This document shows positions 8,666-36,988 of a stretch of 64,000 bases of DNA, in pieces (position 1 is the first letter of the stretch; every line of letters starts with the position of its first letter). Where the stretch lies: the NCBI RefSeq assembly GCF_039654945.1, contig NW_027361692.1:24490001-24554000 (forward strand), in the 5' to 3' direction. Under the pieces are notes generated by a model. The model was not told the DNA's origin. It did no database searches and saw only the letters and a list, made by a program, of their open reading frames with translations. The stretch is from Dendrobates tinctorius (lineage: Eukaryota). A program made the translations under genes and the position numbers.

Positions 8666-9029
8666 GCCCCAGCACAAGGCCAGTAAGTTATTGGATATAA
8701 TGAGCATTTTGAACTCACAGGTACTACACACAATGGGATAACATTAGGTCTTATTGAAAATCTTCATTTTTTCATGAACCTGTTGCTCTAGACCCATATT
8801 TTTCACTTTTTCAAGAGCTAACATGAATAAGCAGACCCCACAGTGGTTACCCGCTTTCTTGTGAGCATGGAAATACAGAACTTGTAGTCAAAAAATTCTG
8901 TTTGGACCCAAGATGCGGTGCGGAAGGGAAGACGTGACATTTGGTATTTGGAGTGGAAAGTTGACTGGAAAAGATTGCAGACACTGTATTTCATTTTCAT
9001 ATTTTTTTATTTTGTTAGTGTGCAATGGA

Positions 9030-10150
9030 CATGTCTATCATCAGCGTTAGCTATTCTTGAGAAGATTCCACATCGCTGTGAAACAGTGGGTATTGGATCA
9101 AGGAAATGAAAATATCTAGTAAGAAGAGAAAGAGAAAAAGAGAAAATAAGAAAAGGACAAAATATAAAATGCACTAATCACTTGATCTCGATTTTGAGAA
9201 GGAATTGTTCTTTTAGTGCATTATGTGAGGTCGGTCTCATTGTGAGATTTTTTTCTCATGCTATACTATCTTCTTTATTTTTCTTATTGGATTTTGCTAT
9301 TGCTGATTGATTTTCTTTGCCCTATGCATATATTTTTAAAGATTGATATGGTATTATATATGCATTCTCTATCCTTATTCAAACACATTGAAAATCACTT
9401 GTATTATTTGTACCTAATCACGTTATTATATGATGTATTAATTATGGCAACACAATTATTCATTTATTATTAAGCACTTTGGCACTATAATCGGTCACTC
9501 ATAATATAATGATGCTGTATGTGCGCCCCATTGCTTCCATTTCCGGTATGACGCCGCATCTGTGTGACGTGATTGTGACCTGGTACCGGCCCTATTGCGT
9601 GACCGGAAATTGCGTGCCGAGACTGAGGCTTGGAAGGCGGTGGTAGCGCACTTCCGCGTCTCACGCATGTGCACTTTCACATGTAGTAGCGGTCACATGA
9701 CTGCAATGATTCACTATATAAATCGGACCGAGACCGGGATTAAGCCACGCCCCCTGAGGAAGCGACATCCTGTGTACGCGAAACGCGCATTGGGGTTTTT
9801 GACCGGGGTCAGACGGGACTATTGAACACATATGGGTAACTATCTTTTTCCCTTACCATGTTTAATATGATATACATGAGGCGGTATGGTGTTTATTGAC
9901 TATGTGGTAATCATGGCATTTGATATGTTTATTCACTGAATTTCACCTTATTGTCTGGCACATGTTTTGGAAAGATATGAGATTTGCATTGAGCGATATT
10001 ATTGTTTGTGCATGTGTCATCATTTTATCCTGTCCTGTATCTTGTGGTCAATTGTTTGACCCATGGATTTAGTCACATCATAAATAAACCCATGTAACTT
10101 ATATGACATAAATTATGTAACTTTTGTACAACATTTGGTAATGAATAAAA
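9030..10150 (+). mobile_element. Probable Penelope-like element 3' end / pseudo-LTR remnant
   Basis: AT-rich tract, then a CpG-rich segment with ccggaa motifs and a TATATAAA, followed by a minimal hammerhead-like motif at 9750-9795. Confidence 0.45.
9750..9795 (+). ncRNA. Minimal type-I hammerhead ribozyme-like motif (probably mutated)
   Basis: cccc-CTGAGGA-a-gcg..cgc-GAAA-cgcgcatt-gggg: stem I cccc/gggg, stem II gcg/cgc, near-palindromic stem III with one substitution at the cleavage triplet. Confidence 0.6.
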
Positions 10151-10815
10151 TTTTAAAAATACTTTTTGGCAACAAATGCTCTTTTTTCTCCTTGTTTGTT
10201 TTTACTGTATTTCATTTGCTGAGTCCCTGAGGTGCCAAAACAACAGAAACTCCCCAAAAGTGACCCCATTTTGGAAACGTGACCCATCAAGGAATTAAGG
10301 TAGGGGGGTGTTGAGTTTGTTACCCCTAGGTGCTTCACAGAACATTTTAAAATGTGGATGTGAAATGAAAAAAAAATTCTGCTAAATGTTTTTAGCTCCA
10401 AATTTGTAATTTTCACCAAATTTAAAATGTAAAAATGTAATTTTTGTATTTGCTGCAAACTTGTCAGGTACACAAGGGTTAATAGGTCAAACTAGTCCCC
10501 ACAATTTATTGCGCAACTTCTCCCCAACGCAGTGCTGCCCCACATGTTGTCAGAGGCTACTGTTTGGCAAGTCAGGGATGAGAAGGAAGGAGCGCTATTT
10601 GGCTTTTATAGCACAGATTTTGCTAGAATAGTTTGCAGGTGACATTTGTGGAGCTCCGAAGGTGCCAGGACAGCAGAAAAACCTCCAAATTGACCCCATT
10701 GTAGAAACCGCACCTCTCAATGTATTAATCCAGAGCTGCAGTGACTATTTTGTAACATCCACGCCAGGCTGTATTCTGGATAACTGCAAATCCGCCAGGC
10801 TAGTACCCATACATT

Positions 10816-12867
10816 CAGGGCCGGTTTTAGGGAAAGTTTAAAATGGGGTCCAAATGCTAACATATTGCACATCACACAGAAGAATTTCGGTTGCAGTTAC
10901 ATGCGCTGAGTTCAGGCCGCTAAAGGAGTGTAATAGACAATACTGAAGTCGTTCAACGCTTGTTTCCTGGCCTCTTTCCACCATCTGAGAAAGAATGATG
11001 GGAACAGAACAATCACTAATGGATCATTAACACATCACCATACAGTATCATATCAGCAGCACATCTACAGTTTACACCCCATAGTCCTCCATGTAATATA
11101 ATGTGCCCCATAGTCCTCCATATATTAAAATACCCTCAGTCCTCCATATAGTATAATACACTCCTCATAGTGCTCCATATAGTATAATACACCGCCAGTC
11201 ATCCATGTAGTACAATTCACTTCCCATAGTATAATGCACCCCATAGTTCTTCACATAGTATAATGTATTCCCCATTAGTCCTCATTACAGTATAATGCAG
11301 CCCTGCCTTACAATATAATGTAACCCCCATAGAATATATTGCAGCCCCCTCTTATAGTATAATGCAGCCACCCCACAGAATATAATGTACCCCCCCCATA
11401 GAATATAATGCAGACCCTCCATAGAATATATGGCAGCCCCGTCAGAGTATAATGCAGCCCCCCATAGAATATAATGCAGCCCCTCCATAGAATACAATGT
11501 AACCCTCCTCATATAGTATAATGCAGTGCTAATAGAATATAATGTAGCCCCCTCAAAGTATAATGAAGCCCCTCATACAATATAATCTAGCCCCCATAGA
11601 ATACAATGTAGCTTCCTCATATAGTATAATGTAGCCCCCTCAGAGTATGATGCAATAACCCCCATAGAATATAATATACTACAGCCCCCCATTGAATATA
11701 ATGTAGCCCTGAATAGAATATAATACAGCCCTCCTCCCCATAGAATATAATGTAGCCCCCATGGTATATAACACAGCCGCATAGTATATAACAGCACCAC
11801 ATGGTATACAGCACAGCCCCCCCCCAGCACCATGGTATACAGCACAATCCCACATGGTATACAGTACAGCCCCCCTCCCCCAGTACAGCCCCCCCAGCAC
11901 AGCACCATGGTATACAGCCCCCCTCCCCCCAGCACAGCACTATGGTATACAGCACCATGGTATACAGCCCCCCCTCCAGCACAACACAACACCATGGTTT
12001 ACAGCGCCACCTCCAGCACAGCACCATGGTATACAGCACCATGCTATACATCCCCCCTCCCCTCCAGCACTGCACCACACCATGGTATACAGCCCCCCAG
12101 CACAGCACCTCACCATGGTATACAGCCCCCCTCCCCCCTAGCACAGCACCATGGTATACAGCTCCCCCTCTCCCACAGCACCATGGTATACAGTCTCCCC
12201 CCCCAGCACAGCACCATGGTATACAGCTCCCCCTCTCCCACAGCACCATGGTATACAGTCTCCCCCCCCCCAGCACAGCACCATGGTATACAGTCTCCCC
12301 CCCCCCAGCACAGCACCATGGTATACAGTCTCCCCCCCCAGCACAGCACCATGGTATACAGTCTCCCCCCCCCAGCACAGCACCATGGTATACAGTCTCC
12401 CCCCCCCAGCACAGCACCATGGTATACAGTCTCCCCCCCCCAGCACAGCACCATGGTATACAGCTTCCCCACAGCACCATGGTATACAGCACCCCCCGGC
12501 ACAGCACCATGGTATACAGCCCCCTCCAGCACAGCACCATGGTACAGTACTCACTGTTGCATTAAAAAAAAAAAAAACACTCCTCACCTCCTCGTGCCCG
12601 CACTGCTCCTGTCTCCTGCTCTGCCTGGTACACAGGGAGTGCGCAATGACGTCATCGCGCACCCATTGTATGTCAGAGGCAGAGCGGGGAATGATGGAAG
12701 AGGGAGCATCAGTCGGTATAGTTCAATGAGGCGGCGGGGTGAGTCGGCACTGGGGGCAGGCGGGCCCCCCTGCCTCACGGGCCCCATAGCGGCTGCGTGA
12801 TGTGCCGCTAGATGGGGGCCCCTGTGGGAGCAGGGGCCCTAGGCAGCTGCCTGGTCTGCCGGCCCTG
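10816..12867. mobile_element. Non-autonomous hAT element with internal minisatellite expansion
   Basis: TIR cagggccgg / ccggccctg with a perfect 8-bp TSD CATACATT (10808-10815 and 12868-12875). Confidence 0.85.
11080..12546. repeat. Compound minisatellite (~21-bp atagaatataatgcagccccc grading into ~33-bp cagcacagcaccatggtatacagtctccccccc)
   Basis: Tandem units directly visible; explains the many low-complexity ORFs in all frames. Confidence 0.93.
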
Positions 12868-18751: not shown

Positions 18752-20491
18752 TTATGTGCGTATGTGGGGGTCCGCTCATGCTCTGTACCCCCAACTGATG
18801 CAGGAGAGAGGTGCCGTCCTTTTATTTCAGTGGATTTCTTGTCCTAATTATGCAAATCCCCCCTCTCAGGTGCTGCCGTCATGGGCTCTAGAAAATCCCA
18901 TTATCAATGAGTAACTTAGATTTTTTTTTTTTTTTTACGACGTTTTGATTTTTTTCAGTTTTATGTGTCGATATGATGAAAAAGCAACATTACTTTTTTT
19001 AAAATAACCATATTCGATATACGGAATAAGTAACATGCCAGTTTGACAAATCAGGTCGTTCTGAATACGGCAATACCAAATGGTGTACTTTTTTTTGCTT
19101 AGTTTTGTTTTATCACAAACGTTGCGTTTTAAGTCGCAAAACCACTTTGTGATGTGTGTGAGCTTTTTGTTTGTGAAATAAAGTAGAAGAACAAAGTACC
19201 GTATATACTCGAGTATAAGCCGAGGCACCTAATTTTTCCACGGAAAACTGGGTATGCTTATTGACTCGAGTATAAGCCGGGTATGCATTGTCCCCTCAGG
19301 TCGGGCTTTCCTTCGTATTGCCCAGCTGCTAACTGCAGTACCTGCATCATCAGTGCAATACTAAGGAAATCCTAAAACCGTGGTGGCTGTTGGGACCTGG
19401 AGATTGGAGAATACTGCTCTAAGTTATCAAGCACAGGAGATTTTATTTTATATCGTGACCGACTTGGACAATAACACAATATCAAAATACCAGCAGCCGA
19501 CAGCACATCAGGAAAAATATAAGAATGCACGTTTAAAGTCCATAGACCCAACTGGACAAACGAAACAAAAAATAGAACAGCATCCAATCCAGGAGAAAAA
19601 ATAAAGAAAATGTCTTTATTCCGCCATCATACCACGTTTCGACCTGCTCGGTGTTTTTCAAGTACTTGATCAAGACGAAACATTGCATGATGGCGGAATA
19701 AAGACATTTTCTTTATTTTTTTTTCTCCTGGATTGGATGCTGTTCTATTTTTTCTTATTTGAGTAACACAATATCAGGCTGCGCTGCGGTAATGAAGAAT
19801 CCACATGGGATCTGGTGTCGTGTGATCATCCACATTGGTCACCTATCCTGGAGATCATCCCCAGCCATGAGGCAGCAGCTGGCATCTTCAGGTCTCATCG
19901 GGAGGGGGGTGCCGGTACACCACCCGCTCAGGTGAGCACCTTACTTTCACTTTCCTTTCCCCGATGGTCTTGTGCGCTTCTGGTTCCCATAGTTTTGGCT
20001 ACCTTTATATTGTTGTCTAGGTTACCAGCCACCTCTGCCAGCTCATAGTTCAGAGCAGCGGTGCGATCAATCCACTGATCTGAACTGTCAGCTTTCAGGA
20101 GGCGACAGGACGCATTGGATGCCTGAACATACAACTCGAGCAAGCTCCATGTCCTTTCCCGTGCCATGGAGACATAACCCTCATCATGGTACCAATGCTT
20201 TTATGCAACTGACAACTAAGCCAGTGTTGCCATAAACTTGTAAAATATTTTATTTTTACCCCAAAGTCTCTATAGCAAAAATAAGTTGTGCCACTCTGCT
20301 GCACCCAGATCACTAATATGGACGGGCAGACATGGAGCGGATCGGGCACAGTAATGCTGAACTAGAAGGCTAGTTCTGTAATATCTACTACTCCCACCAT
20401 CGAGCCGGGGGCTTCTTTCCTCCGCCCGTGACGCCCAGTGTGTGGTCCATCACAGACAACATGATGGATGGCATGCCTCCACAAGGCAGCA

Positions 20492-21532
20492 TCAAGAGAC
20501 GTCCTCCAGGTAGTCCGCCACATCGCTCAGGTGGGAGATGGAGTTGTCCAGGGTGAGCTCCTCCAGCTTGTGGTCACTGGCCGTCAGCTCGTCCACAGAC
20601 AGCTCGTCCTCCAGGTCCTCGCCAATGCTGGCCTCACTCCTCTGGCTGCTGCTGTGGAAGTCGTCCATGTAGTCCTCCTCCTGAGCAGCCCCGATCTCCA
20701 GAGAGGCCATCTTCTCGGAGGTGGATCTCAGCGAGCCTTCTCTGTCCGGGTCCTTGCCCGTAGGTGACCCCTGCGAGTGTGTGGGGACAGGGCGCACCTC
20801 CTCCTTCCAGCCATAGGTTCTCTCAGGCTTGGGGATGGGGTCATCGAAGAACGAGTCTCCTTCCTGGTCGTCCTCGTCGTCCGGCTGCGGGCTGCTGCTC
20901 TTGTAGTCGCCGACGACCACACTCCTGCAGTGGAGGAAGAGCCCCCGGTACACGGCCAGGAAGCGCTGCTCGTCTATGGCGCCGGGGAGCCCCGCCAGCT
21001 GCTCGGTGACGTACGTGTCCAGCATGCCCCGGTGGAAGCCAGGACACAGCTCCAGCAGCAGCGCCCGCAGCTCCGGCTCCCCAAGCTCCCCGGTGCCCGC
21101 CCGCTGCCGGTACTTGGCCCGGGCCTGCTCGGTGCGCCCCGGGGACAGCTCCTCTCTCTGCCGGTGCCGTCTCAGCAGCTCCAGCAGCAGAGGCGCCTCC
21201 GACACAGACAGCCCGAGCTCCCGGGCGGCGGCCGGGCGCTGGTCGGGGGCGCTGGGCAGGCAGGCCTCGGGCTGCAGCACGGCCAGGGTGAAGTCCAGGT
21301 GGAAGTGCTGCAGGAAGTCGGTGAGCAGGCTGGCGAGCAGGCGGCCATCGCTGGTGGCCAGGAACTGCCGCAGCCTCTCGTTGGTGAGCGCCGGCTTACT
21401 CTCCTCCTGCTCCTCCAGCGCCAGGAACACGGACGCCCGCAGCTCGGCCTTGATCTTGTTCAGGACGCCGTTATTCTCCAGCGTATGGATCAGCAGATCC
21501 CGGAGCTCCGTGTCCTCCTCCGCCGCAGACAT
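20492..21532 (-). CDS. CEP43: Centrosomal protein 43 (FGFR1 oncogene partner), intact single-exon ORF of 346 aa; probable retrogene
   Basis: N-terminus EEDTELRDLL..TLEN.GVLNKIKAELRA.VFLALEEQE and LisH-type LDFTLAV.QPE; internal GDSFFDDP.PKPE.TYGW; C-terminus LSDVADYLEDV. No introns or stops; AATAAA on the minus strand at 20249-20254. Confidence 0.93.
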   Translation of the reverse strand: MSAAEEDTELRDLLIHTLENNGVLNKIKAELRASVFLALEEQEESKPALTNERLRQFLATSDGRLLASLLTDFLQHFHLDFTLAVLQPEACLPSAPDQRPAAARELGLSVSEAPLLLELLRRHRQREELSPGRTEQARAKYRQRAGTGELGEPELRALLLELCPGFHRGMLDTYVTEQLAGLPGAIDEQRFLAVYRGLFLHCRSVVVGDYKSSSPQPDDEDDQEGDSFFDDPIPKPERTYGWKEEVRPVPTHSQGSPTGKDPDREGSLRSTSEKMASLEIGAAQEEDYMDDFHSSSQRSEASIGEDLEDELSVDELTASDHKLEELTLDNSISHLSDVADYLEDVS

Positions 21533-21870
21533 GTCGGAGCGGTGATGATTGCCGAGCTAATCGAGCGCAGTTGTGTCACTTACGTGCCGGCGAACAGCCA
21601 ATCACACAGCACGCCGCTTTTAGGGGGCGCTAGTGACGTCAGGGAAGCGCCAGGTTTGAGCGCCAAGTAATCCACGCCTTTGTTGGAACTGTTTCTGTCC
21701 ACTGGTAACTAAGCAACTTTAAGCTCCGCCCTTCCAGGCATTATGGGCAGATGTAAGATGCGGAGAAAAAAGTCGATCGGCTCGTCAGCTCAGCTACTCT
21801 GGCCTTATGGTCTGTGTCTCCCAGCTCAGCCCTCCCCGCGTTCCCCGGGCGCTTGGCAACCGAGCGGCGC
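21533..21870. promoter_or_regulatory. Putative bidirectional CpG-island promoter (CEP43 leftward, RAB23 rightward)
   Basis: CCAAT 21598-21602, perfect CRE TGACGTCA 21634-21641, X-box-like GTAACTAAGCAAC 21705-21717, GC box ctccgccc 21724-21731, half X-box TTGGCAAC 21853-21860; inside a CpG-rich region ~20500-22060. Confidence 0.65.
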
Positions 21871-21912
21871 AGAGCGTGGCAGGAAGACTGGGACTGCGCT
21901 GCCAGGAGCTGG
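21780..21912 (+). other. RAB23: Candidate non-coding exon 1 of RAB23 (start approximate)
   Basis: GC-rich segment after the promoter motifs ending in a possible donor gg|gtagga. The first coding exon has an upstream acceptor, so a 5' exon must exist; this is the most promoter-like CpG island upstream. Confidence 0.4.
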
Positions 21913-22059
21913 GTAGGAGCCGGGCATCGGCGGGATGGGTGCGGTTCTTTGTACCGATGTGGTGTCCGGTTATGTTGGCGTGGCCGCATAACTTAGTGTC
22001 CTAACCCAGTGTGATGGCAGGAGCTGTCTGCGCCGCCGGCCTGTGCTCTGCGGGGGTCC

Positions 22060-23752
22060 GTGCCCTGCCGGATAGGGTTACACGCGGCACAGTGCAGCAT
22101 CGGGGGCAGATCAGCTACATGGCTGATCCATCACTGCTGCCGGAGACCACTGGTCATAGGGTCTGTCGTATCTCGGAGGTCCCTGCCCTGGATGCTGCCG
22201 GATAGGGTTACACTGGGCACAGTGCAGCATCGGGGGCAGATCAGCTACATGGCTGATCCATCACTGCTGCCGGAGACCACTGGTCATAGGGTCTGTCGTA
22301 TCTCGGAGGTCCCTGCCCTGGATGCTGCCGGATAGGGTTACACTGGGCACAGTGCAGCATCGGGGGCAGACCAGCTACATGGCTGATCCATCACTGCTGC
22401 CGGAGACCGCTGATCATAGGGTCTGTCCTATCTCAGGGGTCCCTGCCCTGGATGCTGCTGGATAGTGCTGCTGCCCAGTGCAGCATCAGGGGCAGACCAG
22501 CTACATGGCTGATCCATCTCTGCTGCTGGAGACCGCTGATCATAGGGTCTGTCATATCTCGGAGGTCCCTGCCCACATGGCTGATCCATCACTGCTGCCA
22601 AAGACTGCTGATCATAGGGTCTGTCCTATCTCAGGGGTCCCTGCCCTGGATGCTACCGGATAGGGTTACACGGGGCACAGTGCAGCATCAGGGGCAGACC
22701 AGCTACATGGCTGATCCATCACTGCTGCCGGAGACCACTGATCATAGGGTCTGTCATATCTCGGAGGTCCCTGCCCACATGGCTGAGCCATCACTGCTGC
22801 CGAAGACCATTGATCATAGGGTCTGTCCTATCTCAGGGGTCCCTGCCCTGGATGCTGCCAGATAGGGTTACACTGGGCACAGTGCAGCATCGGGGGCAGA
22901 CCAGCTACATGGCTGATCCATCACTGCTGCCGGAGACCGCTGATCATAGGGTCTGTCCTATCTCAGGAGTCCCTGCCCTGGATGCTGCCGGATAGGGTTA
23001 CACGGGGCACAGTGCAGCATCGGGGGCAAACCAGCTACATGGCTGATCCATCACTGCTGCCGGAGACCACTGATCATAGGGTCTGTCCTATCTCAGGAGT
23101 CCCTGCCCTGGATGCTGCCGGATAGGGTTACACGGGGCACAGTGCAGCATCGGGGGCAAACCAGCTACATGGCTGATCCATCACTGCTGCCGGAGACCAC
23201 TGATCATAGGGTCTGTCCTATCTCAGGAGTCCCTGCCCTGGATGCTGCCGGATTGGGTTACACGGGGCACAGTGCAGCATCGGTGGCAGACCAGCTACAT
23301 TGTCTGATCCATCACTGCTGCCGGAGACCACTGATCATAGGGTCTGTCCTATCTCAGGAGTCCCTGCCCTGGATGCTGCCGGATAGGGTTACACGGGGCA
23401 CAGTGCAGCATCGGTGGCAGACCAGCTACATTGTCTGATCCATCACTGCTGCCGGAGACCACTGATCATAGGGTCTGTCCTATCTCAGGGGTCCCTGCCC
23501 TGGATGCTGCCGGATTGGGTTACACGGGGCACAGTGCAGCATCGGGTGGCAGACCAGCTACATTGTCTGATCCATCACTGCTGCCGGAGACCACTGATCA
23601 TAGGGTCTGTCATATCTCAGGGGTCCCTGCCCTGGATGCTGCCGGATAGGGTTACACGGGGCACAGTGCAGCATCGGGGGCAGACCAGCTACATGGCTGA
23701 TCCATCACTGCTGCTGGAGACCACTGTTCATAGGGTCTGTCATATCTCGGGG
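22060..23752. repeat. Tandem array, ~130-bp unit, about 12-13 copies with variants
   Basis: gatagggtta recurs at 22071, 22201, 22331 and again at 22861, 22991, 23121. Confidence 0.95.
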
Positions 23753-24792
23753 GTACTAAGCACAGATATCAGCCCCCTGTGCCTGCGGTAGGGATCTGGT
23801 ACCTTATATATGTGTGGGGTGATCGGGGGCATAAATGGGGAAACATGGGGCCCCCAGATCAAAAGCCCTGATTTCCCCCTCCCCCTCTATTTGGTGGGGT
23901 CAGCAAATAAACAGTCACACAAGCACATACATCCCAGTATTTACAGATATGGAGGGGCAAATGTGCACAGTAATTGTGCCTCTATTGTAGCCCCTTATTA
24001 TTCTCACCCACTGCAGTGCCCCTTTCATGACCCCCCCCCCCAATGAGTACTGTATATTACCCTATAAATGACACACACACTGTCCCCACACAGTATGACC
24101 CCTCCACAGGGAACCCACCACATATACCTTATTGTGTCAACCAACCCAATATGATGTTCCCACAGTATGAGGCCACACATTATATTGCCACTAGTTACCT
24201 CTCCCCCCACAGTATGCTGCCTTCCTCCACAGTGCAGTGCGCATGGTACAGTGGCCTCATTGCACACCGTATAATGGCAAAATGAAAGGTAACCCCCAGC
24301 CCCATTTCCCAATGTCCTGCTTCGGTTTGTGTTTTGCGTACCAAGACTCCATGCACTGAGCTCCATTTAGTGATGTCCTCTTGCCTGCTGTGCTGAGACT
24401 TGGACACACATGCTGAATAGTGGAAGGTGAAGCTGATGGCTACACTATTATATTCAACTAGGGAAGCAGCTACCATTGAAATCCAGGCACCGTTCATCTC
24501 CAGCGCTCCACAACTGAGAGGCCACGCGGTCTGCCGCTATTTATCTTTTGGCCTTTGATGTTGAGGGGCCCGGGTCCTGTAAACGTTTTAGAGCCCATCC
24601 TGAGGCCGGTTTAGATTCACTTAAGTATTTATACAGCTTTTGAGGCTGTTGAGTTCATGAGAGGAGACACGCGACCACTCTACATGGACCATGAATCTCT
24701 GACATGGGAAACCAGGCTTACTTTACATAGTGTACTAAGGCAACAAAACATAAATCCTGCAGCAGAAAAAGGGAGAAAACCCAAATATATAT

Positions 24793-24824
<32 letters not shown>

Positions 24825-25519
24825 CATTCCTTATAAAAGACCGAAATCCCAGAAACCCACAATGCCAGTGTGAAAGTGTCACTTATTTCCTGCCGACCTC
24901 ACACCTCGGACAAGAGGGCTATGAAGCAAAGAGCTGTGGGCAAATGTCTATGTTCCTTTAGCTTCTGTGTCACCTCTGACCTGACCATGGCCGCTGTTGT
25001 CGCCCTTTCCTCCAGCTGAGACGTAGAATTCTGCCCCCTAGAGAGCATTGATCTGCCCGAGTGCCTGTCTTATCTGTAGACACATAACTATGGCAGCAGA
25101 TTCATGTTTTGCAGAATTCTGTATTTCCTCCCAGGCACTGCTTCAGATTCCTGTTATTCAGAGCAGATTGGAAATACTGAATTCTTATGTGTTAACGCCC
25201 TGAACATATGTTTCCAACCAAAATATTTTGCTCCTGAATGTGAAACATCCCAAGAGTCATCCAGGACTGAGCCGTCCAGAAACGTCGCTGATTGCTGTGT
25301 ACATGGAGGCAGCGCTTGAAATCCGGAGTCTATGGCACCGGAAAGACAACCTAAAATAATAGCCACAGCGCTGAAACTCAGGCTTAGCTTAGTAGTCAGA
25401 GGTCTTGCTGTTCAGTCTTTCACTCACTATCATCCTTTTTTTTGTGCTAGAAAGAAGTGTCAGACTTTTTTGATTGCACGCTGGAGAATATATACAGTGT
25501 GTATATATATAATATAATA

Positions 25520-26236
25520 ATTAGTAAATCAACCCCCCTTTATCACCCCCTTAGTTAGGTAAAAATAATAAAATAAAAAATGTATATATTTCCATTTTTC
25601 CGTTAGGGGTTAGGGTTATGGTCGGGGTTAGAGCTAGGGTTGGGGTTAGAATTGGGGGAGTTTCCACTGTTTAGGCACATCAGGGGGTCTCCAAACGCGA
25701 CATGGCGCCACCATTGATTCCAGCCAGTTTTGCATTCAAAACATCAAACTGTGCTCTTTCCCTTCTGAGCCCCGACGTGTGCCCAAACAGTGGCTTTCCG
25801 CCACTTATGGGGTATCGGCGTACTCAGGAGAAAGTGCACAACAAATTTTGTGGTCCATTTTCTCCTGATACCCTTGTGAAAATAAAAAAAATTGATTCCA
25901 AAGTAAATTTTTTGCGAAAAAAGTAAAATGTTCATTTTTTTCCTTCCTCATTGCTTTATTTCTCGTGAAGCACCTGAAGGGTTAATAAACTTCTTGAATT
26001 TGGCTTTGAGCACCTTGAGGGGTGCAGTTTTTAGAATGGTGTCACTTTTGTGTATTTTCTGTCATATAGACCCCTCAAACTCACTTCAAACAATATGTCA
26101 TGAAAAAACATTATCAGAATCAGCGGGATCCATTAAAGCGTTCCGGAGTTATAACCTCATAAAGTGACAGTGGTCAGAATTGTAAAAATTGGCCTGGTCA
26201 TTAAGTACTAAATTGGCTCTGTCACTAAGGTGTTAA
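25520..26236. mobile_element. Fragment of an abundant TTAA-ended non-autonomous DNA element (related fragments ~195-1230, 10210-10760, 12900-13230)
   Basis: Shared motifs (ccccattttggaa, gtcactttt, gggttaata), degenerate ttaggg run, and an end resembling aaggggttaa. Confidence 0.45.
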
Positions 26237-26239
26237 GGT

Positions 26240-27200
26240 AATCTCGGAAAGATGCAGTGATGTTGATATCAGGGCTGTGGGGGCCATATCATCACTTCTA
26301 GGAATAGTTTTAAGATAGTTCCTTAGAGACACATCTGCATGTTTTGGGCCATTTTCCTGCTGCAGAATAAATTTGGAGCCAATCGGATGCCTCCCTGAAG
26401 GTATTGCATAGTGGATAAGAATGTGCCTGTATTTCTCCGCATTGATAACACCATTAATCCTACCCAATTCCATGTGCTGAAATGCAGCCCCAATCTTGCA
26501 AGAAACCTCCACCATGCTTTACTGTACACTGCATGCTGTTACAGCCCAAGGCAAATTTTGATTCATCAGTTCACACATTTGCTGCCATTTTTCTGCTCTC
26601 CTGGTCCCATGATTTTGTGCATAGCTGAGTCTCTGACAGGTTTCCATGCTGAAGGTATGACTTTTGATCACAATTCTTCTATAAACACCACTTCTGTCCA
26701 GAACAGTAGAATGCTGTACCTGGGTCCTACTGGCTACTGGAACTTCTGAGCTGATAGCACTTCTGGACATATTTCGAAGGGAAGTAAGCATGGTGTGTCT
26801 TCCATCCGATGCACAAGTTTCCTCCTGTTACCATGAAGTCTGCGTTCCTCCACGTTGACCATTTCTTGATGCCTCTTCAAAGGGGATTTAACAGCAGGTC
26901 TTGAAAACTCCAGTCTGTTTTGAAATCTGTGCCTCGCAGAGACCCTCTAAATGCAGTTCTTCTACTTCAGGGTTTCCCAACTCCAGTCCTCAAGGCACAC
27001 CAACAAATCATGTTTTCAGGATTTCCTTAGTATTGCTCAGGTGATAATTGCTTCACCTGTGCAATACAAAGGAAATCCTGAAAACATGACCTGTTGGTGT
27101 GCCTTGAGGACTGGAGTTGGGAAACCCTGTTCTACCTTGTGTCTTTTTGCTGTGATCAGTCTTGCCATGGTGTTTGACCTGTGACCTGAAACTGTCTTGG
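26240..27200 (-). mobile_element. Decayed Tc1 transposase fragment
   Basis: Minus-strand remnants such as KYRHILIHYAIPSG..LQQENGPKH (QDNDPKH-like) with frameshifts. Confidence 0.7.
26968..27129. mobile_element. hAT-type MITE, 162 bp
   Basis: Long TIR cagggtttcccaactccagtcctcaaggcacaccaaca; 8-bp TSD TTCTACTT/TTCTACCT. Confidence 0.88.
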
Positions 27201-27369
27201 GCCTCATTCAGATGTCTGGGTGGCACATACATGTGCTGTCTGCTTTGACTTATTTATTTTTTCCACGGCTACCACACATTCTAATCTATGCAGTCCTGCG
27301 AGCCTGGAATAAGGTTATTCTGAAGCTGCAATTTATTTATTTTTAAAATATATTACTGTGGGAGTGCCA

Positions 27370-28460
27370 TGAATGTGCCGCATTGTGCTGAGCCCAGGTC
27401 CTCTTTAAATCCACACAGCCATTCGTGAGTTTACAGGTTTCTTGTGGTATGGAAATGGTTTAGAGTTCCTCGTGGTCTATTGGCTGTGCTGCTTATTGGA
27501 ACCACACCCTTCCATTTTATAAACCCGTGTCTGGCTTCCCTCCATGTCGTCATGGATTTGGACAATTTTATGTGGCCTCCTTTTGGCTCTGGGAGGGGTA
27601 TGTACTGTATACCCATGCTGGACTAGGATTCTCTGTCAGTTATACTTTCGTTCTGTCTGGGTCTGACCCCTGGTGTGCATACTGCATTGTTTGATTGTTT
27701 TCTGGTTTTGACCCTCCGGCCCGTCTGTCTTGACTCTGCTACTTCTCGTCCCTTTTGTACCTCACCGCTACGTTTGGCTTTCTGACCTCTTGCTTCTACC
27801 TGACTACTCTTTTGTCTCATTCCCCGGTACCTCGTTTGACCCCCCGGTTTAGACTTGGTAACGTTTAGTCTTCCCTCCGGCGCCTCACGCCGCCCTCGGC
27901 CACTCCCCCTGGGTCACGTGGGTTAGGTCCTGCTCGCAGCCTAGTGAGTTCTCCACCGCTCTGCGTTCACCTCCCTCACAGCTGTGTGCAGCCTTCCCTG
28001 AAGCGGTCAGCACAGAGGACCGTGACACTTGAGAGCAATAGAATCTTCATTCTGTTCCTGGCTGCATTGGAGAAGGTGTTCTGGAGAGCTGCTCTTGTCG
28101 TTTTGAGATTGTTGTATGCGGTTTGTTTTGAATACCTCTATCTTTGCCTTTTTGGCATTTTTTTGCGTTGCTTTTCTGCCTCCTTACTGTGCACCCATTT
28201 TTCCGTTGTATTTTATCCTGTGTGCCTTTTGTTTGATGGTGCATTGGTTCTGCCTGTCTGTCTAGTCGGTGTTAACCTTTTACTCCCTGGGGGGTAGGGT
28301 GGGAGCTGCTAGGATTTCATAGGCGCACAGGGAGGTACTTGACACAGGCCTCCCCACCTTCAGGGGTAACTCTGGGGTTAGAGATAGACTAGGTTTTCCC
28401 TAGATTAATGGACAGTATAGAGTCCCTCCTCCCCAACTTTCCTATGGTCACAGCGTTACA
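27370..28460 (+). mobile_element. LTR-like remnant(s)
   Basis: Two LTR-like ends (cgtgaca at 28027, cgttaca at 28460), TATA-like motifs and pyrimidine-rich ctgac repeats; no TSD confirmed. Confidence 0.35.
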
Positions 28461-31017
28461 AGGAATTTATCGGTTACTTTTTGTTTCTGTTTTACTTCAC
28501 GATTCAACATCAAATTTTTTGTTTTTACGTGTTTTTTTTCTCCTCCTCTTCTTCCAAGAGCCATCTTTTTTTTTATTTTTCTCTCAACGTAGCTATTGTT
28601 TTATGGTTTTTGTTCTTACTGCGGTCATTAGTTCAGTGCAAAATGACCCAGAAATATTTTTGTCCAGTCCAATGACGGCGATGTCAGGCTTGCATCGAAT
28701 CCCATCACCTATTTAAGTGATTTTGCAAAAATTTTGTCACCATGTTTTCGTTTTTCTGACACATAACAACATTACAGCTGAGTGATAGCTTGGTGTTCTA
28801 CACGGTGGGCTAACAGTTTTACTGATACCAATCCGGAGCACAGAGGACATGTATGATCCTCTTCCCCCCTCCCCCCTTTTTTTTTTTTCTCTTCCTTTGG
28901 CATTCTAGTTGACCAAGGGAAAAAAACATAATTAATCTTTATTTTTATAATAATCTTTGTTTATATAGCGCTAACATATTCCGCAGCGCTTTACAGTTTG
29001 CACACATTATCATCACTGTCCCCGATGGGGCTCACAATCTAAATTCTGGCGTTTTGATGTCTTTTCTCCTTACGTTTTTTTTTTTTTTTACCATAGAGTT
29101 GATTCTTTCTATATTTTGATAAATCAGACTATTACATACTCGGTGATTTTTCTTCCCTCTTTCTTTTTAACAAGGATTGTGTAGTCTTGAGACCTGTAAC
29201 TTAGTTTTGCCACCTATAGAGCTGTATGAGGACTTTGAGGTTCATACAATGTTTTGATCAGTTTTTATTGCATTTTTTGTGGGAAGTGCAGAGACCCAAA
29301 AATTGGTTGTTAGTAATTAAAAAGATAGAAACACCAATGCATACAGTATGGGTTTCACTTTTTTCTTTCTTTTTTTTGTCATCTTCATAGGGTACTTGAA
29401 CCTGTAATAGTTTTTTCTGTTCTTTATGCCAAAGAATCTAACCCTAATAATGATCGTGACCTGACAGAGCTACCGCCATGGCAGCGATAGGCGCAGGCCC
29501 CTGGCTGATATGGCCCCCGTACAGGGTTTTGTGAATTTAGTTATCGATAGAGAAAATATCTGATTTCTTGGGACATAGATTCCCTTTAAAAATCTTGTGT
29601 ATCACCAGGTTTTTGCTATGTTACCTGAGAGGGGCAGAGACTCTGATTCCAGCAATGTGTCATTTACTAGTCTGTATCCGTTCATTTTGATATAGTGTGT
29701 TCTCTGACTGGTGATTTCTATATAACTCTGCCCACATCACTGACTGACTTGCGCTCTGTATACGCTGTGCATAGGCAGCAAGCTACTAATCAGTGGTAGT
29801 GGCAAAGTTACATGGAGTAAGGGGACCTCATGGTGCAAGACAACTAGTCCCACTAGTTATAACCTAATGATAATGCATTGATATGTATCAAGGTCTCTGT
29901 CATTCTGCTTTCAGATTACAAAGAAAACTGGTCACAGATTCCCTTTTAATTGTATAATCAAGTGGATAGAAGGGACCAAAAGGGGAGAACCACTTGTATG
30001 TTATTTGGGTATTTCATAGATCTGGTGCTCTCTATCCGAATTACAGCATGGGAATACAAGTCCTACAAAGCCATATTTCAGTGGCAGGAACCTTGTTACA
30101 TCCGGACATCTGATCTCAGAAACTGAGACGTCCAGAGCGTAATTCCTGCATTCACGTTCAAAGTCAGAGGAGACGTGGTGACAGGTCACTTTTCTGCTCC
30201 TCTCTGGCTCTTGGCAGATGTTTACCTGGACAGAGTATGATGGGTCAGGGCCATAGCCCCTGATTCCCTCCACTTACATCTTGTAGCTCGTGCTCATTGC
30301 ATGTGAAGAATGAATAACTAATGCTTTTTAGATTATTGGTTCAGTAAGAGAAAATGTATTATTAGAGAATTCCCTCTATACTTATTCAACTTTCCAAAAA
30401 TAAAAAAACGTCGCAGGCAAGTATGAACCATCCTGCAGCCGGTGTAACCAGTAAAAGTGTCCTTTTATTCAGGAAAATGAGAATACGATGTAGATCAGCG
30501 ATGGTTAAGAACATTTCAGAGTCGCTGCACGTATGAGGACTTTGAAAATACAAATTATTGCTTTATAGAGCATCATTGATTTCAGGGTGCTGGACATGTA
30601 AAATGGGGTCACATGCAAAATATAGATGGCAACGATGCTTATCTAAAAATGCATGCAGGTCACATGCACACATATGGTTCGAATAGTAAAAACTACAAAG
30701 CCACAATAACGGTATAGCGTAGTGGTATTACTAGCAGAGCAATAAAGGTAATACATATAATCCCATATAAAGACATATAGGCCAAATGACAAAGAATGGA
30801 AAGTGGCATGCAGAAAAGATTAGGTCCCGAAAGAATAAATGGAATATGAATTGTACAGGGAAATGGCAAACAATGCAAGGCTATTGTGTAGGAAATGTAT
30901 TGAAATAGGCATCAGACAACAGCAGTGCATGGGTCCTCGCCATAATGGTTATATACAAGGCACATAATGTATCATAGATTAGGAATACATGTGTGTCCAC
31001 CTGATGATGTACAGGAG

Positions 31018-31052
31018 CCCCGACGCTCGTTTCACCCTGCTTCCTCAGGGGG
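31018..31052 (-). ncRNA. Minimal type-I hammerhead ribozyme-like motif in a probable Penelope remnant (~30630-31260)
   Basis: Minus strand cccc-CTGAGGA-agcagggt-GAAA-cgagc-GTC-gggg: intact core, GUC triplet, stem I cccc/gggg. Confidence 0.65.
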
Positions 31053-32398
31053 CGTATGTAGAGTCGGCAGAGAGACTGGGGGTTTAAATATAGCCAGGGG
31101 TCCAATTGTAGAAGAGAGATCAGCATCCATTATTGTTATGGTCAGGTGTGCAGCGCATGACATGCTCACTCCTCAATGGAGAAAATGACTTCATCATGTT
31201 TCCGGGCCGCGAGACACAAGGTGTTAAAATGTCACCCAAAGGTCTTTTAAACATATTGATACATTCTTTTCATTGCTGATTTTTCGGGCTGGGTCCAGAG
31301 GAGGATGCTCTTGTTCAGTGTTCTATATGCAGAGATTGTGAAGGCAGACATGCTAATAAACCCTCACTGCCTTCTCCTTGAGGAGTCTTTCTGCATCTGA
31401 CTGCCCTCCCCACTGCATGATTTTGTGCAAGCACCTATTGACATTTTAGAATGTCAGCGCAGGGTAAAGTGCGGAGGGCCCCAGACCTTTAAAGTCTATG
31501 GATGGTCAAGAAGTAGTGAAGTCCTGTTCCAGATTAATCACACCTTCCCACCTGCTTGTTTTCGGTCTTTCCACCCCCTGCCTTTTCTTGGATTAACAGT
31601 TCTGGCTTTAGTTGGAGAAGGGCAGAGATAGATGGAAGGTGGGAAGGTGTATATAAATGACTGGCCCCGCCGTGATGCACTGAGCGCCTGAACTTGGTTT
31701 GAACAGTCATTCAGTGCTGACAGTCCCGTTAATAATATATATATATATGAGTGCCAGTGACTTTCGTCAGAGAAGGCTCTCGGATGGTTTTGTGTCGTCT
31801 CAGGAGGTTGCTTGGGTTCCAGACTCCTAAATGGTCAGTTTGTGTCTAACTGATAAAAACACTGTAGCATTGTATCAGTAGATTCTGCTCTTATTAGAAA
31901 GTTCAGCTGTGGTTTCTATGAAATCTTTTGCTTTTAGTATTCTGATTTTTTTTTCTCCATTCCTCACAGTACCTTTGTTAACAGAACAGGAATGTATTGG
32001 GCAGGAGCCAGACTTTTTTCCATTGCTATGTTTAGTCTAAGCTGTGTGATGCTTGTGCTCCATTAAGATGACAGCCCAATAATACATGGGCCAGATACTT
32101 CTTTCTGCAGAACAGTATTGTCTATAGCAGGGGGAGGGAACCTTCTGTGGCCCCGGGCAGATTCCTGGGCCGGCAGCTGTGTTTTGACGGCCCCTGGCCT
32201 TTGAATTTCTTCTTGCTCTGTGAGCACACACACGGTGTTCACTGCTGAATGCTGAAACGTGTGCAATGAAGGGTTACATCCAGCGTCAGGACGTACTTTG
32301 TGGGCAGAGTTAGCATGCAATTTCTACAGCCCCCCAAAGGATCCTATAAATATCCATATGGCCTTTGGAAGAAAAACGTTCCCCACCTCTGACCTTAA

Positions 32399-32847
32399 AG
32401 GGAATCTGTCACCCCTTTTTTGAGATATCATATAATGATATCATTCAATTGTGTGTCACATAAGGATTCTCTTAGTACTTTTGCTTCCCCCTGACCCCGC
32501 ACCTTTCATGCATAAATACCTTTTTTATATATCGGTTCAAATGTATGTAAACTGCTGCTGTCTGGTCTGCTGGGCGGGGCTTATTCACTTGCTCCCCCCT
32601 CCCTGTCTTGCTCTATACATTTCTTCTTGCATAGAGCAAGACAGGGAGGAGGGAGCAGGTGAATAAGCCCCGCCCATCGGACAGGACTGCGGCAGTTTAC
32701 ATACATCTGAACCGATATAAAAAAGGTATTTATGCATGAAAGGTGTGGGGTCAGGGGGAAGCAAAAGTACTAAGAGAATCCTCATGTGACACACAATTGA
32801 ATTATATCATTACATGATATCTCAAAAAAAGGGGTGACAGATTCCCT
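32399..32847. mobile_element. TTAA-target palindromic MITE (T2/Kolobok-like)
   Basis: agggaatctgtcacccctttttt / aaaaaaggggtgacagattccct with arms complementary over ~190 bp; TTAA on both sides. Confidence 0.88.
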
Positions 32848-33143
32848 TTAAGTAATAAAGCTCATTTTCTTCGAGTTCTTTTATTTACTCCCCTATGCAC
32901 ATATAACTCAAGGTCTATTATGACGTCTTGTATTATATACTAGTTTTAGATTGTATTTTAAAGTTCTTTATCACGAAACTTATCTCCAAACTATAGGGCA
33001 AAGTAACAGTGGAGTAATTGTCTATAGCAGCTGATCATGTTCGAAGCCCTCATTTTTCCAAGGTCCTGTAATTATTATTATTATTCAAAATGAAAGCATC
33101 ATCTGACTAATTGTGCTGGACAACTTTTACATAGGGCCTTATA

Positions 33144-33667
33144 CAGTGGCATGTCAAAATTTGGGCACACCTGGTCAAAATTACTGTTATTGTGAACAGT
33201 TAAGCAAGTTGAATATTTTCATCTTTTACATGTTAAAAATTACAAAAAGGAAAATGGGCTGATGCAAAAGAGTTGGGCACCCTTGGGGATTTGTGTGCTC
33301 AGATAACTTTCAAACCTTAATTAGCCTGTTAGGGTTATGGATTGTTCACTATCATTGTTAGACAAGGCCAGGTGATGCAAATTTCTCAGCTTTAGAAAAT
33401 CCCAGCCTCCGCTAACCTTGTGCCAAAAAACAGCAGCCATGGGTTCTTCTAAGCAGCTGCCTAGCCCTCTGAAAATGAAAGTGAAGGAGGCCCACAAAGC
33501 AGAAGAAAGTTATAAGAAGATAGCAAAGCATTTTCAAGTTGCCCTTTCCTTAGTTCGAAATGTAATTAAGAAATGGCAGTTAACAGTGGAGGTCAAGATA
33601 AGGTCTGGAAGACCAAACAAAATTACAGTGAGGGCTGCTCTTAACATCGCTAGAAAGGCAAATCCAA

Positions 33668-33726
<59 letters not shown>

Positions 33727-34714
33727 GCATGACTGCAACAGACCTTCAGAAAGATTTAGCAGACTCTGGAGTTGTGGTAAAATGTTCTACTGTTCAGAGA
33801 CCCCTGCACAAATATATGGCCTTCATGAATGGGTCATCAAAAAACCTCTCCTATGTCTTTACCATATAATTCAGAGTTAAAGGTATTCAAAAGAACATCT
33901 AAACAAGCCTGATACATTTTGGAAGCAAGTCTTGTGGACTAATTGAGGTTAAAATAGAACTCTCTGGCCACAATGATCAGAGGTATGTGTGGAAAACAAA
34001 AAAGGGCACAGAAATTCAGGAAAAAATATCTTGATGACCATGAACCATGGAGGTGGATCCATCATGCTTTGGGGTTGTGTTGCATGTGCAGTCAAATCCA
34101 TGGGGAACATTTCATAGGTAGGAGAAGAAATGGATTGCTGTAAATGAAATTTCAACAAATTCTTGATGCAAACATATGACCATCTGTCAAAAAAAGCTGA
34201 AATTGAAAAGAAGATGGCTTCTACCAATGGATAGTGATCTTAAACACACATCAAAATCCACAATAGACTACCTCAAAAGGCGCAAGCTGAAGGTTTTACA
34301 ATGCCCCTCACAGTCTGTGATCTGAACGTCATTAAAAATGTGTGGCTAGAACTGAAAATAGCAGTGTTTGCAAGACAACCCAGGAATCTCAAACCTGGAA
34401 AAATTTTCCAAGGAAGAATGGATGAAAATTCCTCAAACAAGAATTAAAAGATTCTTAGGTGGCTACAAAAAGCTGTGATACTTTCAAACGAGGGTGCTAC
34501 TAGGTACTAGCCATGCACGGTGGCCAAACTTTTGCATCGGTCCATTTTCCTTTTTGTAATTCGCAAATGTAAAAGACTTTGCCTGAAATAGAAATGTGTC
34601 ATATTTAACTTTAGCCCTTTTTAGAGATCTTTATTTTTATTTTTTCAACTTGCTTAACTGTTAACAATAACAGTAATTTTAACCAAGGGTGTCCAAACTT
34701 TCACATTGCCACTG
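33144..34714 (+). mobile_element. Full-length but decayed Tc1 transposon with an inserted (CA)n tract (33671-33725)
   Basis: TA-cagtggc...gccactg ends, long TIRs, transposase remnants (MGSSKQL..., RSGRP, HGGGSIMLWGC) with many stops and frameshifts. Confidence 0.85.
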
Positions 34715-34880
34715 TGTCTGTGGGGTTCCAACACTGTGTTTTGTAGTTTTATTAGTTTACTTTTACAATCTCTGCAGTTTGTCTTTTGTGATGCGATTGT
34801 GTAAACTTGACTCTTCTCGATCTTCCTTATATGCCTCCAGGCTAAAGTCATTCAAAAGTGGTGAAGGTCGAACAATCAAG

Positions 34881-35035
34881 ATGTTGGAAGAGGATATGGA
34901 GGTGGCCATTAAGGTGGTGGTGGTTGGGAATGGTGCGGTTGGTAAATCAAGTATGATTCAGAGGTACTGCAAGGGAATATTCACAAAGGATTATAAGAAA
35001 ACCATTGGCGTGGACTTCCTAGAAAGGCAAATACA
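34881..35035 (+). CDS. RAB23: Ras-related protein Rab-23, first coding exon (exon starts at 34841)
   Basis: MLEEDMEVAIKVVVVGNGAVGKSSMIQRYCKGIFTKDYKKTIGVDFLERQI; acceptor ctccag ends at 34840; phase-2 donor gtacgt at 35036. Confidence 0.97.
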
Positions 35036-36988
35036 GTACGTATTATTTTAACATTTGTTTGCATATGTTAGTAATGTTCTTTGTATCACACATTTGTTTG
35101 AGCTGCCATATCTCCAGTGCACACAATTATCATTGTCACTTGCAAAGAAATAAGTATAGCAGCAGGATGCATGTGCAACAAACCTCTCCAATCATCTCCT
35201 CCTCGCCGTGGTTTTGCAGTTGGTAAGGAACACCTAATGGTTTTGGGGCAGATGCCATGAAACGTGACATCGGTTGACCCAAAGTAGAAATTTCCTAATA
35301 GCACAACAACAGTCAGCCATGGGTATCCGGGTCTGGCCCAGCATCTACAACTTTGAATTGAAGTTTCAATGAGGACCTGGTGGTTAATAGACCTGTGCAA
35401 GCCTTCTTAACTGGGAGCTTGTTACAGGGCGCTATTCCGTATCTTAAATAATGTCAGGCTTGACTATTAATAATCAATATTCGGCTAATTCTTCACCTGT
35501 TACTATTCAGATTCCTTTGCATTATATTCTACAACTGGCGAGATACTGAGACAAAACCAGTGTATCAATGAAAGGTATTTATTACACACGTCTACAGTTA
35601 AATACACTACTGAATTATCACACTAACAGTATACAGTAAAAACACTATATAATTACAATTAACCCCACAATATCCGAATTATACTTCCCACCCACTTACC
35701 TAAAACATACACACATTAATTACAGCTCACCCACCTATTGCTAACTATCCCTATGGGAAATAAGGGGTTAATTGTGATACTTATCACTTCCCGGGACTTG
35801 GTGTGGTTTAAGATCCTGCTTGAGACTTGTTCATTTTGATGAATGTTAGGCAGTCTACACTTTCATGGGACAACCGGATGCACTTATCTGTCAGAACACC
35901 ACCAGCAGTGCTGAAGACATTCTAAGAGAACGCTGGCTGCCGGGCATGACAAAACCTCCAATTCGTGACAGGCGAACTCATGCCACTCTTCCATTTTTGA
36001 CCAAAATGAAAAAGCGTCCAACTTGTCCCTCCTGATGGCATTGATATTGAGCTCCAGATACTCCTGCACCATCCTCTCTAGTCATTCACAACGTGTCAGA
36101 CTTGTACTCTGTTCTACTGGTCTAAAAAAAAAATGTGTGAAATGACTCACAGAAATTGCTTATGCCACTTACACTGCTGCTGTGCTAATGTTTTTGCGAT
36201 AACGCCTTGACGTTCCCGGCGTTGGACGCCTAAAACTGCCATGCACACTGTGTGCTTCACTACTGTCTTGAGGAAAACCATTCTTAAGATAGTCTACAAG
36301 CATGTTTCTGTTTCGATACTCCAGCATTCGCGCGTCCCTTTCCTTAGGGTGAAGTAGGAAAATTTACTCTTGTACCGTGGATCTAACAGAGTGGTAACCC
36401 AGTAGTCAACACTATTTCTAACGCTAAGAATATGTGCATTATGTTGCAGATAGTGCAGCAAGAAGGTGCTCATGTGTCGGGCGCTTTCATAAAGTTCAAG
36501 TGTATGGTGTATTGCTGGCGGGGTAAAACTCAAGCTTGCTTCCTCCGTTCCCTCCCGCCAACTACGGAAAACAGAGAGATGATTATCCTCTTCATCTCCT
36601 GACTGTTGTGCGTCCATCACCTCTTCCTCCTCCATTTGTTCCTCGGCTCCGGCACTTTCACTAACAGTTTGTCAGGTACCATGAGCTCCCCCTCGATCGT
36701 TGTAATCCACCCTCCCATGGCATCCACCTGTGCGATGACAGACCGGAACTTTGAGATATTGTTATCCCTTTCTCATCCTCCTCTGTTGTCACCTCTCCCT
36801 CTGGAACCACCACCTCACGCACACTATTCAAAGTGTTCTCCGGCATGTAAATGACCGGAATAGTGATACTGATGACAGCATTGTTGGCGCTAACCTGAGT
36901 AGCCATTTCTCAACTGTTTAGAGGTCCATCATCTGTGCTCACACTGCAAGCGTGTTTTGCACCGTGCCCGTACTGTGTTGGCCTAGGC

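Follow-up and report, generated by a model that had tools for sequence, protein, structure and literature searches.

A copy of a gene that derives from its mRNA brings no promoter to the site where it lands, and the locus described here raises the question of how such a copy of CEP43 (FGFR1OP) came to be expressed, and to what extent it shares its regulation with RAB23, the gene with which it stands head-to-head in the genome of Dendrobates tinctorius. The stretch of DNA analysed, hereafter the window, comprises 64,000 nucleotides of contig NW_027361692.1 (assembly GCF_039654945.1), and the region in question lies at 21533-21912. CEP43 and RAB23 both act at the cilium or basal body. A preliminary description of the window had proposed that the CEP43 retrocopy survived by co-opting antisense activity of the RAB23 promoter, thereby creating a new, co-regulated ciliary gene pair behind a shared promoter with X-box-like motifs for RFX factors. 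Mammalian retrocopies that are transcribed from a neighbouring gene's bidirectional promoter are known, for example HTR7P1 beside HEBP1, and 11 human and 12 mouse retrocopies have been found within 2 kb of a neighbour in head-to-head arrangement, with raised co-expression (Carelli et al. 2016; PMC4772013). A literature search found no publication describing the CEP43 retrogene-RAB23 locus. The parts of the two genes in the window are as follows.

20492-21532, minus strand: intronless CEP43 (FGFR1OP) coding sequence, 346 amino acids plus stop codon (open reading frame, Pfam, identity, dN/dS)
21532-21530, minus strand: ATG of CEP43 (sequence)
21533-21581, minus strand: CEP43 5' UTR (contig 5' ends at 21546, 21570 and 21581)
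19646-20491, minus strand: CEP43 3' UTR (contig ends)
about 21751-21912, plus strand: non-coding exon 1 of RAB23 (contig of run X17, loose end of a contig of run X5, splice donor)
21913-34840, plus strand: intron 1 of RAB23, 12.9 kb (splice sites, contigs)
34841-35036, plus strand: exon 2 of RAB23, with the conserved start codon at 34881 (Pfam Ras, splice acceptor, spliced contig)
62609-62695, plus strand: exon 3 of RAB23, limits approximate, with the WDTAGQEEF switch II region (six-frame motif search)

The minus-strand open reading frame contains the FOP N-terminal dimerisation domain (Pfam FOP_dimer, PF09398; E-value 1.9e-18), and among named relatives it is closest to the CEP43 of Phyllobates terribilis, at 86% identity, and of Ranitomeya, at 85%, with other neobatrachian frogs next in order. 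With dN/dS values of 0.15-0.34 against seven other frogs and no internal stop codon in eight species, it is intact and under purifying selection. A CEP43 coding sequence in a single exon is also found in Phyllobates, Bufo, Rana, Hyla, Mixophyes, Pyxicephalus, Gastrophryne, Lithobates and Mantella, such that all ten other neobatrachian loci from these nine species are intronless (nine intact, one frameshifted). In Pelodytes, which lies outside Neobatrachia, the gene spans 53 kb and has multiple exons, with an intron after the codons for NKIK; this intron is missing from the CEP43 of the window, where the reading frame is continuous and the RNA contig unspliced. Many CEP43 isoforms are annotated in Xenopus, Ascaphus, Bombina and Spea. 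The contrast between the intronless neobatrachian loci and the intron-containing gene of Pelodytes bears out the view that the CEP43 of the window is a retrocopy. No obvious poly(A) remnant or target-site duplications are present downstream of its stop codon, and none are expected at such an age. The retrogene appears to be the sole annotated CEP43 of the species that have the shared promoter. Residues ~110-215 of the protein (window 20900-21200) resemble a degenerate remnant of an EF-hand pair. Pfam recognises this pair in the CEP43 of ranoids, Xenopus, salamanders and fish, whereas it gives no match for it in the window's CEP43, and the precomputed domain lists of hits from Hyloidea do not contain it.

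Evidence at the RNA level comes from Logan contigs of four public runs (X1, X5, X17 and X18; three studies and two organisms, X5 being from a related species) placed on 19200-22050; the ends of such contigs do not prove true RNA starts or ends and their depth is not an expression measure. Contig depth is zero at 21984-22050, within the intron, and in X17 also at 21600-21695, and the runs therefore behave as RNA. A 1928-nt contig of X17 lies without gaps on 19646-21570 and represents unspliced CEP43 mRNA with a 5' end 38 nt upstream of the ATG. The other pieces on the CEP43 side cover 20288-21546 (X18), 20306-21032 (X1) and the sequence from 20239 (X5). Two 3' ends of CEP43 are thus apparent, one near 20240-20306 (three runs) and the other at 19646 (one run), and the contigs suggest two forms of the 3' UTR, a short one that ends near 20239-20306 and a long one extending to 19646. 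The long-form contig also carries T-to-C differences clustered at 19707-19749.

On the RAB23 side, the last 163 nt of a 1676-nt contig of X17 lie on exon 1 (21751-21913) and its remainder elsewhere, only the last 60 nt of a 1113-nt contig of X1 lie on the same exon, and the match of a contig of X5 stops at 21913 and continues as window sequence from 34842 onwards. A G stands at both 21913 and 34841, which places the joint at 21912|34841; the donor reads CTGG|GT (21912/21913) and the acceptor AG|G (34840/34841). The preliminary description had named spliced reads from ~21912 to 34841 as a check on its placement of RAB23 exon 1; precisely this splice is found in the RNA-derived contigs, and exon 1 lies where it was predicted. 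The donor of exon 1 is kept in the aligned Hyloidea, and intron 1 measures 8-13 kb across the frog loci compared. The RAB23 N-terminus encoded by 34881-35036 matches Pfam Ras with an E-value of 4.4e-12, and the longest stop-free frame around exon 2 is of 122 amino acids in the window and 106 in Mixophyes. Exon 1 holds two upstream ATGs, at 21758 (in frame through the splice, adding 65 amino acids) and 21807 (out of frame); a coding extension of RAB23 from these was rejected, as neither ATG is kept in Bufo or Hyla. The RAB23 models of 286 amino acids in Phyllobates and 257 in Hyla probably contain spurious upstream extensions.

The start of the CEP43 reading frame and the 5' end of RAB23 exon 1 are thus separated by 218 bp, and the mRNA ends (21546-21581 for CEP43 and 21751 for RAB23; contig 5' ends, and hence approximate starts) leave a gap of ~180 bp. 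The genes lie head-to-head on opposite strands with starts less than 1 kb apart, and transcription of both is seen in contigs from the three studies and two organisms. What had been described as a shared bidirectional promoter of ~300 bp is therefore divergent and transcribed on both sides as proposed, but its size is nearer to 180-220 bp. A low-depth contig carries the CEP43-side transcription as far as 21697, 8 bp from the X-box, and one contig of X5 spans the entire intergenic gap. Because the contig ends vary and a contig crosses the gap, the start sites are probably dispersed and may overlap. The motif positions given in the preliminary description were all recovered from the sequence of the window, and the cluster of CCAAT, CRE and GC-box motifs that it had placed ~70 bp from the CEP43 ATG is present, with the CCAAT box at 66 bp. 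The elements of the region are the following.

21598-21602: CCAAT box (ATTGG in the sense of CEP43; sequence)
21623-21629: GC-rich GGGGGCG (sequence)
21634-21641: palindromic, perfect CRE, TGACGTCA (sequence)
21647-21667: tandem TGGCGC element, GCGCCAGGTTTGAGCGCCAAG, E2F-like by resemblance only (alignment of frogs)
21705-21717: X-box-like 13-mer, GTAACTAAGCAAC, with a spacer of 1 nt (fit to the RFX consensus)
21726-21731: GC box CCGCCC, between the X-box and the RAB23 start (sequence, alignment)
21855-21860: GGCAAC half-site, inside RAB23 exon 1

Bidirectional promoters of vertebrates that lie in CpG islands typically serve head-to-head genes less than 1 kb apart and are enriched in CCAAT/NF-Y, E2F, Sp1 and CRE-type motifs. 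The frog pair resembles them in its spacing, in a CpG observed/expected ratio of ~0.9 (0.95 in the intergenic part and 0.81 in RAB23 exon 1), in its CCAAT, CRE, GC-box and E2F-like elements, and in that the alignments of frog promoters reveal no conserved TATA box in the ~180-bp intergenic region. It is unlike most vertebrate bidirectional pairs, which are ancient, in that one partner is a retrogene with a datable origin. Thus, 21533-21912 is very probably a compact, CpG-rich bidirectional promoter together with the non-coding exon 1 of RAB23, common to both genes.

Eight genomes have this shared promoter, viz., the window and those of Phyllobates, Bufo, Hyla, Mixophyes, Gastrophryne, Pyxicephalus and Mantella, the seven other frogs belonging to Hyloidea, Myobatrachidae and Ranoidea. 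From the CEP43 5' UTR to the donor of RAB23 exon 1 (~260-370 bp), the seven can be aligned with the window at 70-91% identity (blastn and alignments). For example, the promoters of the window and Pyxicephalus are 72.5% identical, which corresponds to a Jukes-Cantor distance of ~0.34, whereas synonymous sites in the adjacent coding sequence of the same two frogs are saturated (dS of 1.70), and RAB23 intron 1 gives no alignment among the frogs compared. Judged by these alignments, the promoter core is conserved in the eight neobatrachian genomes far beyond the neutral rate. The percentage of invariant columns, over seven genomes, differs along the region as follows.

21647-21667, tandem TGGCGC element: 81%
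21835-21885, block in RAB23 exon 1: 76%
CRE: 75%
21724-21731, GC box: 75%
X-box: 69% (9 of 13)
Intergenic region overall: 33%
Start of intron 1: 4%

The conservation is concentrated in discrete putative footprints, which are the CCAAT box, the CRE, the tandem TGGCGC element, the RFX-type X-box, the GC box and the block of 50 bp in exon 1. These are not retained to the same degree: the CCAAT box is present at the aligned site in the window, Phyllobates, Bufo, Hyla and Gastrophryne and absent in Mixophyes and Pyxicephalus, and a block in the CEP43 5' UTR is kept in six of seven genomes. The CRE is perfect in six of the eight promoter-sharing genomes and its CGTCA core is invariant in all seven aligned. 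No other invariant stretch of the intergenic region is as long as the tandem TGGCGC element, which is also more conserved than the X-box and of which an exact 20-mer occurs in Mantella too; a reading of this element as a CDE/CHR pair was dropped, its spacing being unlike that of known examples. The nearly invariant block of ~50 bp in exon 1 contains the GGCAAC half-site, and its 25-mer core is exact in five loci, while a 24-mer from this core is exact in Mantella. Two conceivable roles for this block are those of a downstream promoter element and of an RNA element in the 5' UTR.

The published consensus for the RFX X-box is GTNRC(C/N)N0-3RGYAAC (PMC2859551), and the 13-mer GTAACTAAGCAAC matches it with a spacer of one nucleotide, in agreement with the earlier assignment of this site. 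The second site that had been put forward, GGCAAC at 21855-21860, is indeed a half-site, but it lies inside RAB23 exon 1 (~+105) and not in the intergenic promoter; its partner half does not fit, no second X-box with two half-sites is present in 21533-21912, and a lone GGCAAC, expected ~0.2 times per 380 bp, has no statistical weight alone. A 14-mer X-box pattern, with one mismatch, matched less often than expected by chance and nowhere in the promoter. The aligned sites in the eight genomes read as follows.

Window and Phyllobates: GTAACTAAGCAAC
Bufo: GTAACCTAGCAAC
Hyla: GTTACCAAGCAAC
Mixophyes: GTAGCCAAGCAAC
Gastrophryne: GTAACCAAGCAAC
Pyxicephalus: GTATCCTAGCAAC
Mantella: GTATCTTAGCAAC

All eight genomes agree in the strong half, AGCAAC, and six of them keep the full consensus; the natatanurans Pyxicephalus and Mantella each depart from it once, at the R of the weak half. 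Variation is confined to four positions, all of which fall within the six degenerate positions of the consensus (hypergeometric p ~0.02). It might be argued that the 13-mer is fortuitous and is conserved only through the conservation of the whole core promoter. The preliminary description had looked for several motifs, its 13-mer pattern occurs once in the 64-kb window against 0.6 expected and is hence unremarkable window-wide, and a third of the intergenic columns are invariant anyway. Set against this, a match to the published consensus, with any spacer and on either strand, is to be expected in no more than 2.2% of 380-bp random sequences with this composition, this chance is to be multiplied by that of a substitution pattern that follows the degeneracy of the consensus, and the consensus has persisted in six of the eight lineages despite four variable positions. 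We consider a fortuitous site improbable on these grounds. The comparison rather supports an X-box under constraint, with the pattern expected for an RFX site having one strong and one weak half, and the balance of probability lies slightly on the side of its being occupied by an RFX protein in vivo.

Whether such occupancy would amount to cilium-specific control is a separate matter. The locus could be a generic bidirectional CpG promoter of the housekeeping or cell-cycle type, in which NF-Y, CREB/ATF, Sp1 and the E2F-like tandem element do the work and the X-box is bound by the ubiquitous RFX1 or RFX7, or by another factor, without cilium-specific co-regulation. The highest conservation in the intergenic region is that of the tandem TGGCGC element, and the CRE and the GC box are conserved like the X-box, as such a promoter would have it. 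Also, neither rab23 nor fgfr1op appears in the supplementary texts, possibly incomplete as available, of a scan of human X-box genes (PMC5838959) and of studies of Rfx2 targets in Xenopus (PMC3889689) and in mouse testis (PMC4498915). Literature searches found no paper linking RAB23 with RFX and X-box, and nothing relevant on FGFR1OP with RFX2 or with retrogene. Moreover, the CEP43 of ranid frogs works behind an X-box-free promoter. However, an invariant strong half with substitutions only at degenerate positions fits recognition by RFX specifically, and RFX input is biologically sensible for two genes of the cilium or basal body. We regard the generic promoter as a serious contender, although its chances are a little short of even. 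That the X-box measurably co-regulates CEP43 and RAB23 is conceivable but, as a prediction from sequence, somewhat doubtful.

A second way in which the genes might lie close together without co-regulation is that of two abutting one-way modules, the X-box, the GC box and the exon-1 block acting on RAB23, and the CCAAT box, the CRE and the 5'-UTR block on CEP43, with nothing more than proximity between them. The layout of the region has features of such a division, as the X-box precedes the RAB23 contig end by 34-46 bp but is removed from the main CEP43 end by 135-147 bp, while the CCAAT box and the CRE are 28-71 bp from the CEP43 end. The CCAAT box and the 5'-UTR block have also been lost in some lineages, whereas the elements on the RAB23 side are kept in all eight genomes. 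On the other hand, 180 bp is less than one nucleosome with its linker, so that all the elements would have a single nucleosome-free region in common; the CEP43-side contig reaches 21697, and reads of X5 tile the whole gap. Besides, mammalian head-to-head retrocopy pairs are co-expressed (PMC4772013). Two separate modules are therefore an unlikely description of this region, and we retain that of one promoter common to both genes.

The age of the arrangement bears on its origin. Gene models of RAB23 are found upstream of CEP43 on the opposite strand in Phyllobates, Hyla, Mixophyes and Pyxicephalus, and the pair is therefore no younger than the last ancestor that Hyloidea, Myobatrachidae and Ranoidea share; the earlier suggestion of a new gene pair has to be abandoned. 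By timetrees, this ancestor is well over 100 million years old. No similarity to the shared promoter was found in the Pelodytes CEP43 locus, in which an intron comes before the exon with the ATG, so that the promoter of the parental gene lies outside the sequence compared.

Ranidae are the exception to this arrangement. In Rana temporaria (locus stretch 9000-11500), CEP43 is preceded by sequence that, beginning directly at position -1, has no relation to the shared promoter, and the similarity of ranid CEP43 to that of other frogs is confined to the coding sequence and 200-300 nt of the 3' UTR. The upstream sequence of CEP43 in Lithobates pipiens is 84% identical to that in Rana. The intact copy of Lithobates lies within the span of a gene model for ZNF451 on the opposite strand, and a second copy, 424 kb away and inside a segmental duplication, is frameshifted after ~31 codons, which looks like relocation followed by segmental duplication. 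Since Pyxicephalus and Mantella retain the pairing with RAB23, the retrogene probably moved again in the lineage leading to Ranidae, presumably by a second retroposition. As the CEP43 of Ranidae is intact behind an unrelated promoter, the pairing is dispensable, and CEP43 is evidently able to function in the absence of RAB23's promoter and X-box.

Based on these observations, we hypothesize that a promoter-less CEP43 retrocopy landed ~200 bp upstream of a pre-existing CpG promoter of RAB23, in the opposite orientation, and that CEP43 has since been expressed from the divergent activity of this promoter, an instance of promoter piggybacking. NF-Y, CREB/ATF, Sp1 and possibly E2F would provide basal activity in both directions, and an RFX dimer at the X-box, which is nearest to the RAB23 start, would raise the expression of one or both genes in ciliated cells. 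We regard this account, of a retrogene piggybacking on the CpG promoter of RAB23 with its RFX-type X-box, as likely. The direction of the co-option is suggested by the reasoning that a retrocopy brings no promoter and that RAB23 was there first. In the reverse scenario, the retrocopy would have gained a CpG promoter of its own, from which RAB23 later recruited its non-coding first exon; the long intron 1 of RAB23 (8-13 kb) is what one would expect of a recruited distal exon. Yet vertebrate RAB23 genes usually have a non-coding first exon with a long intron behind it, and the strongest conservation, including the block of 50 bp in exon 1, is on the RAB23 side, which an old RAB23 element explains more easily. 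Such a reversal is thus very improbable, and the RAB23 promoter is probably older than the retrocopy.

A more far-reaching possibility is that, in Neobatrachia, a retrogene under the RAB23 promoter took the place of the centriolar-satellite gene CEP43, such that a single conserved X-box would place both genes under common RFX control. This is speculative and we consider it rather unlikely, but if true, it would constitute a lineage-specific rewiring of the ciliogenesis programme persisting for more than 100 million years, with Ranidae as a natural uncoupling experiment.

With respect to known systems, the locus is an old and unusually tight case of documented retrogene promoter sharing, in another vertebrate class. 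As in the retrocopies of Carelli et al., an intronless, mRNA-derived copy stands head-to-head within 2 kb of an older gene with a CpG-rich promoter, and both genes are expressed. Unlike those mammalian examples, the frog pair is very old, being common to Hyloidea, Myobatrachidae and Ranoidea; the retrogene is apparently the only annotated CEP43 and not an extra copy; and the gap is unusually short (~180 bp), with a conserved X-box and a later move in Ranidae. The region also resembles ciliary promoters with RFX X-boxes (PMC2859551, PMC2375033, PMC5838959), as the 13-mer fits the consensus, is phylogenetically conserved and lies less than 50 bp from the transcription start of a cilium-related gene. 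It differs from these in its degenerate weak half (AGTTAC-type), in having one predicted X-box for two divergent genes, and in that the papers searched, so far as their texts were available, list neither gene among RFX targets.

The CEP43-RAB23 locus thus provides a datable and deeply conserved example of a promoter-less retrocopy that became a working centrosome/cilium gene. Three groups of frogs, i.e., those with a multi-exon CEP43 (Pelodytes and, by isoform number, Xenopus), those with the RAB23-CEP43 pair and the ranids with the moved retrogene, allow a direct test of how promoter sharing affects expression, and the short promoter with its six footprints is a handy reporter substrate for the two-way action of one X-box.

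Repeats are found on both sides of the region. A tandem array with a 130-bp unit (12.9 copies, 84% matches) occupies 22065-23754, beginning 150 bp into RAB23 intron 1. At 19200-19298, the summed contig depth is very high, with many diverged pieces in all four runs, as in a highly repeated, transcribed element.
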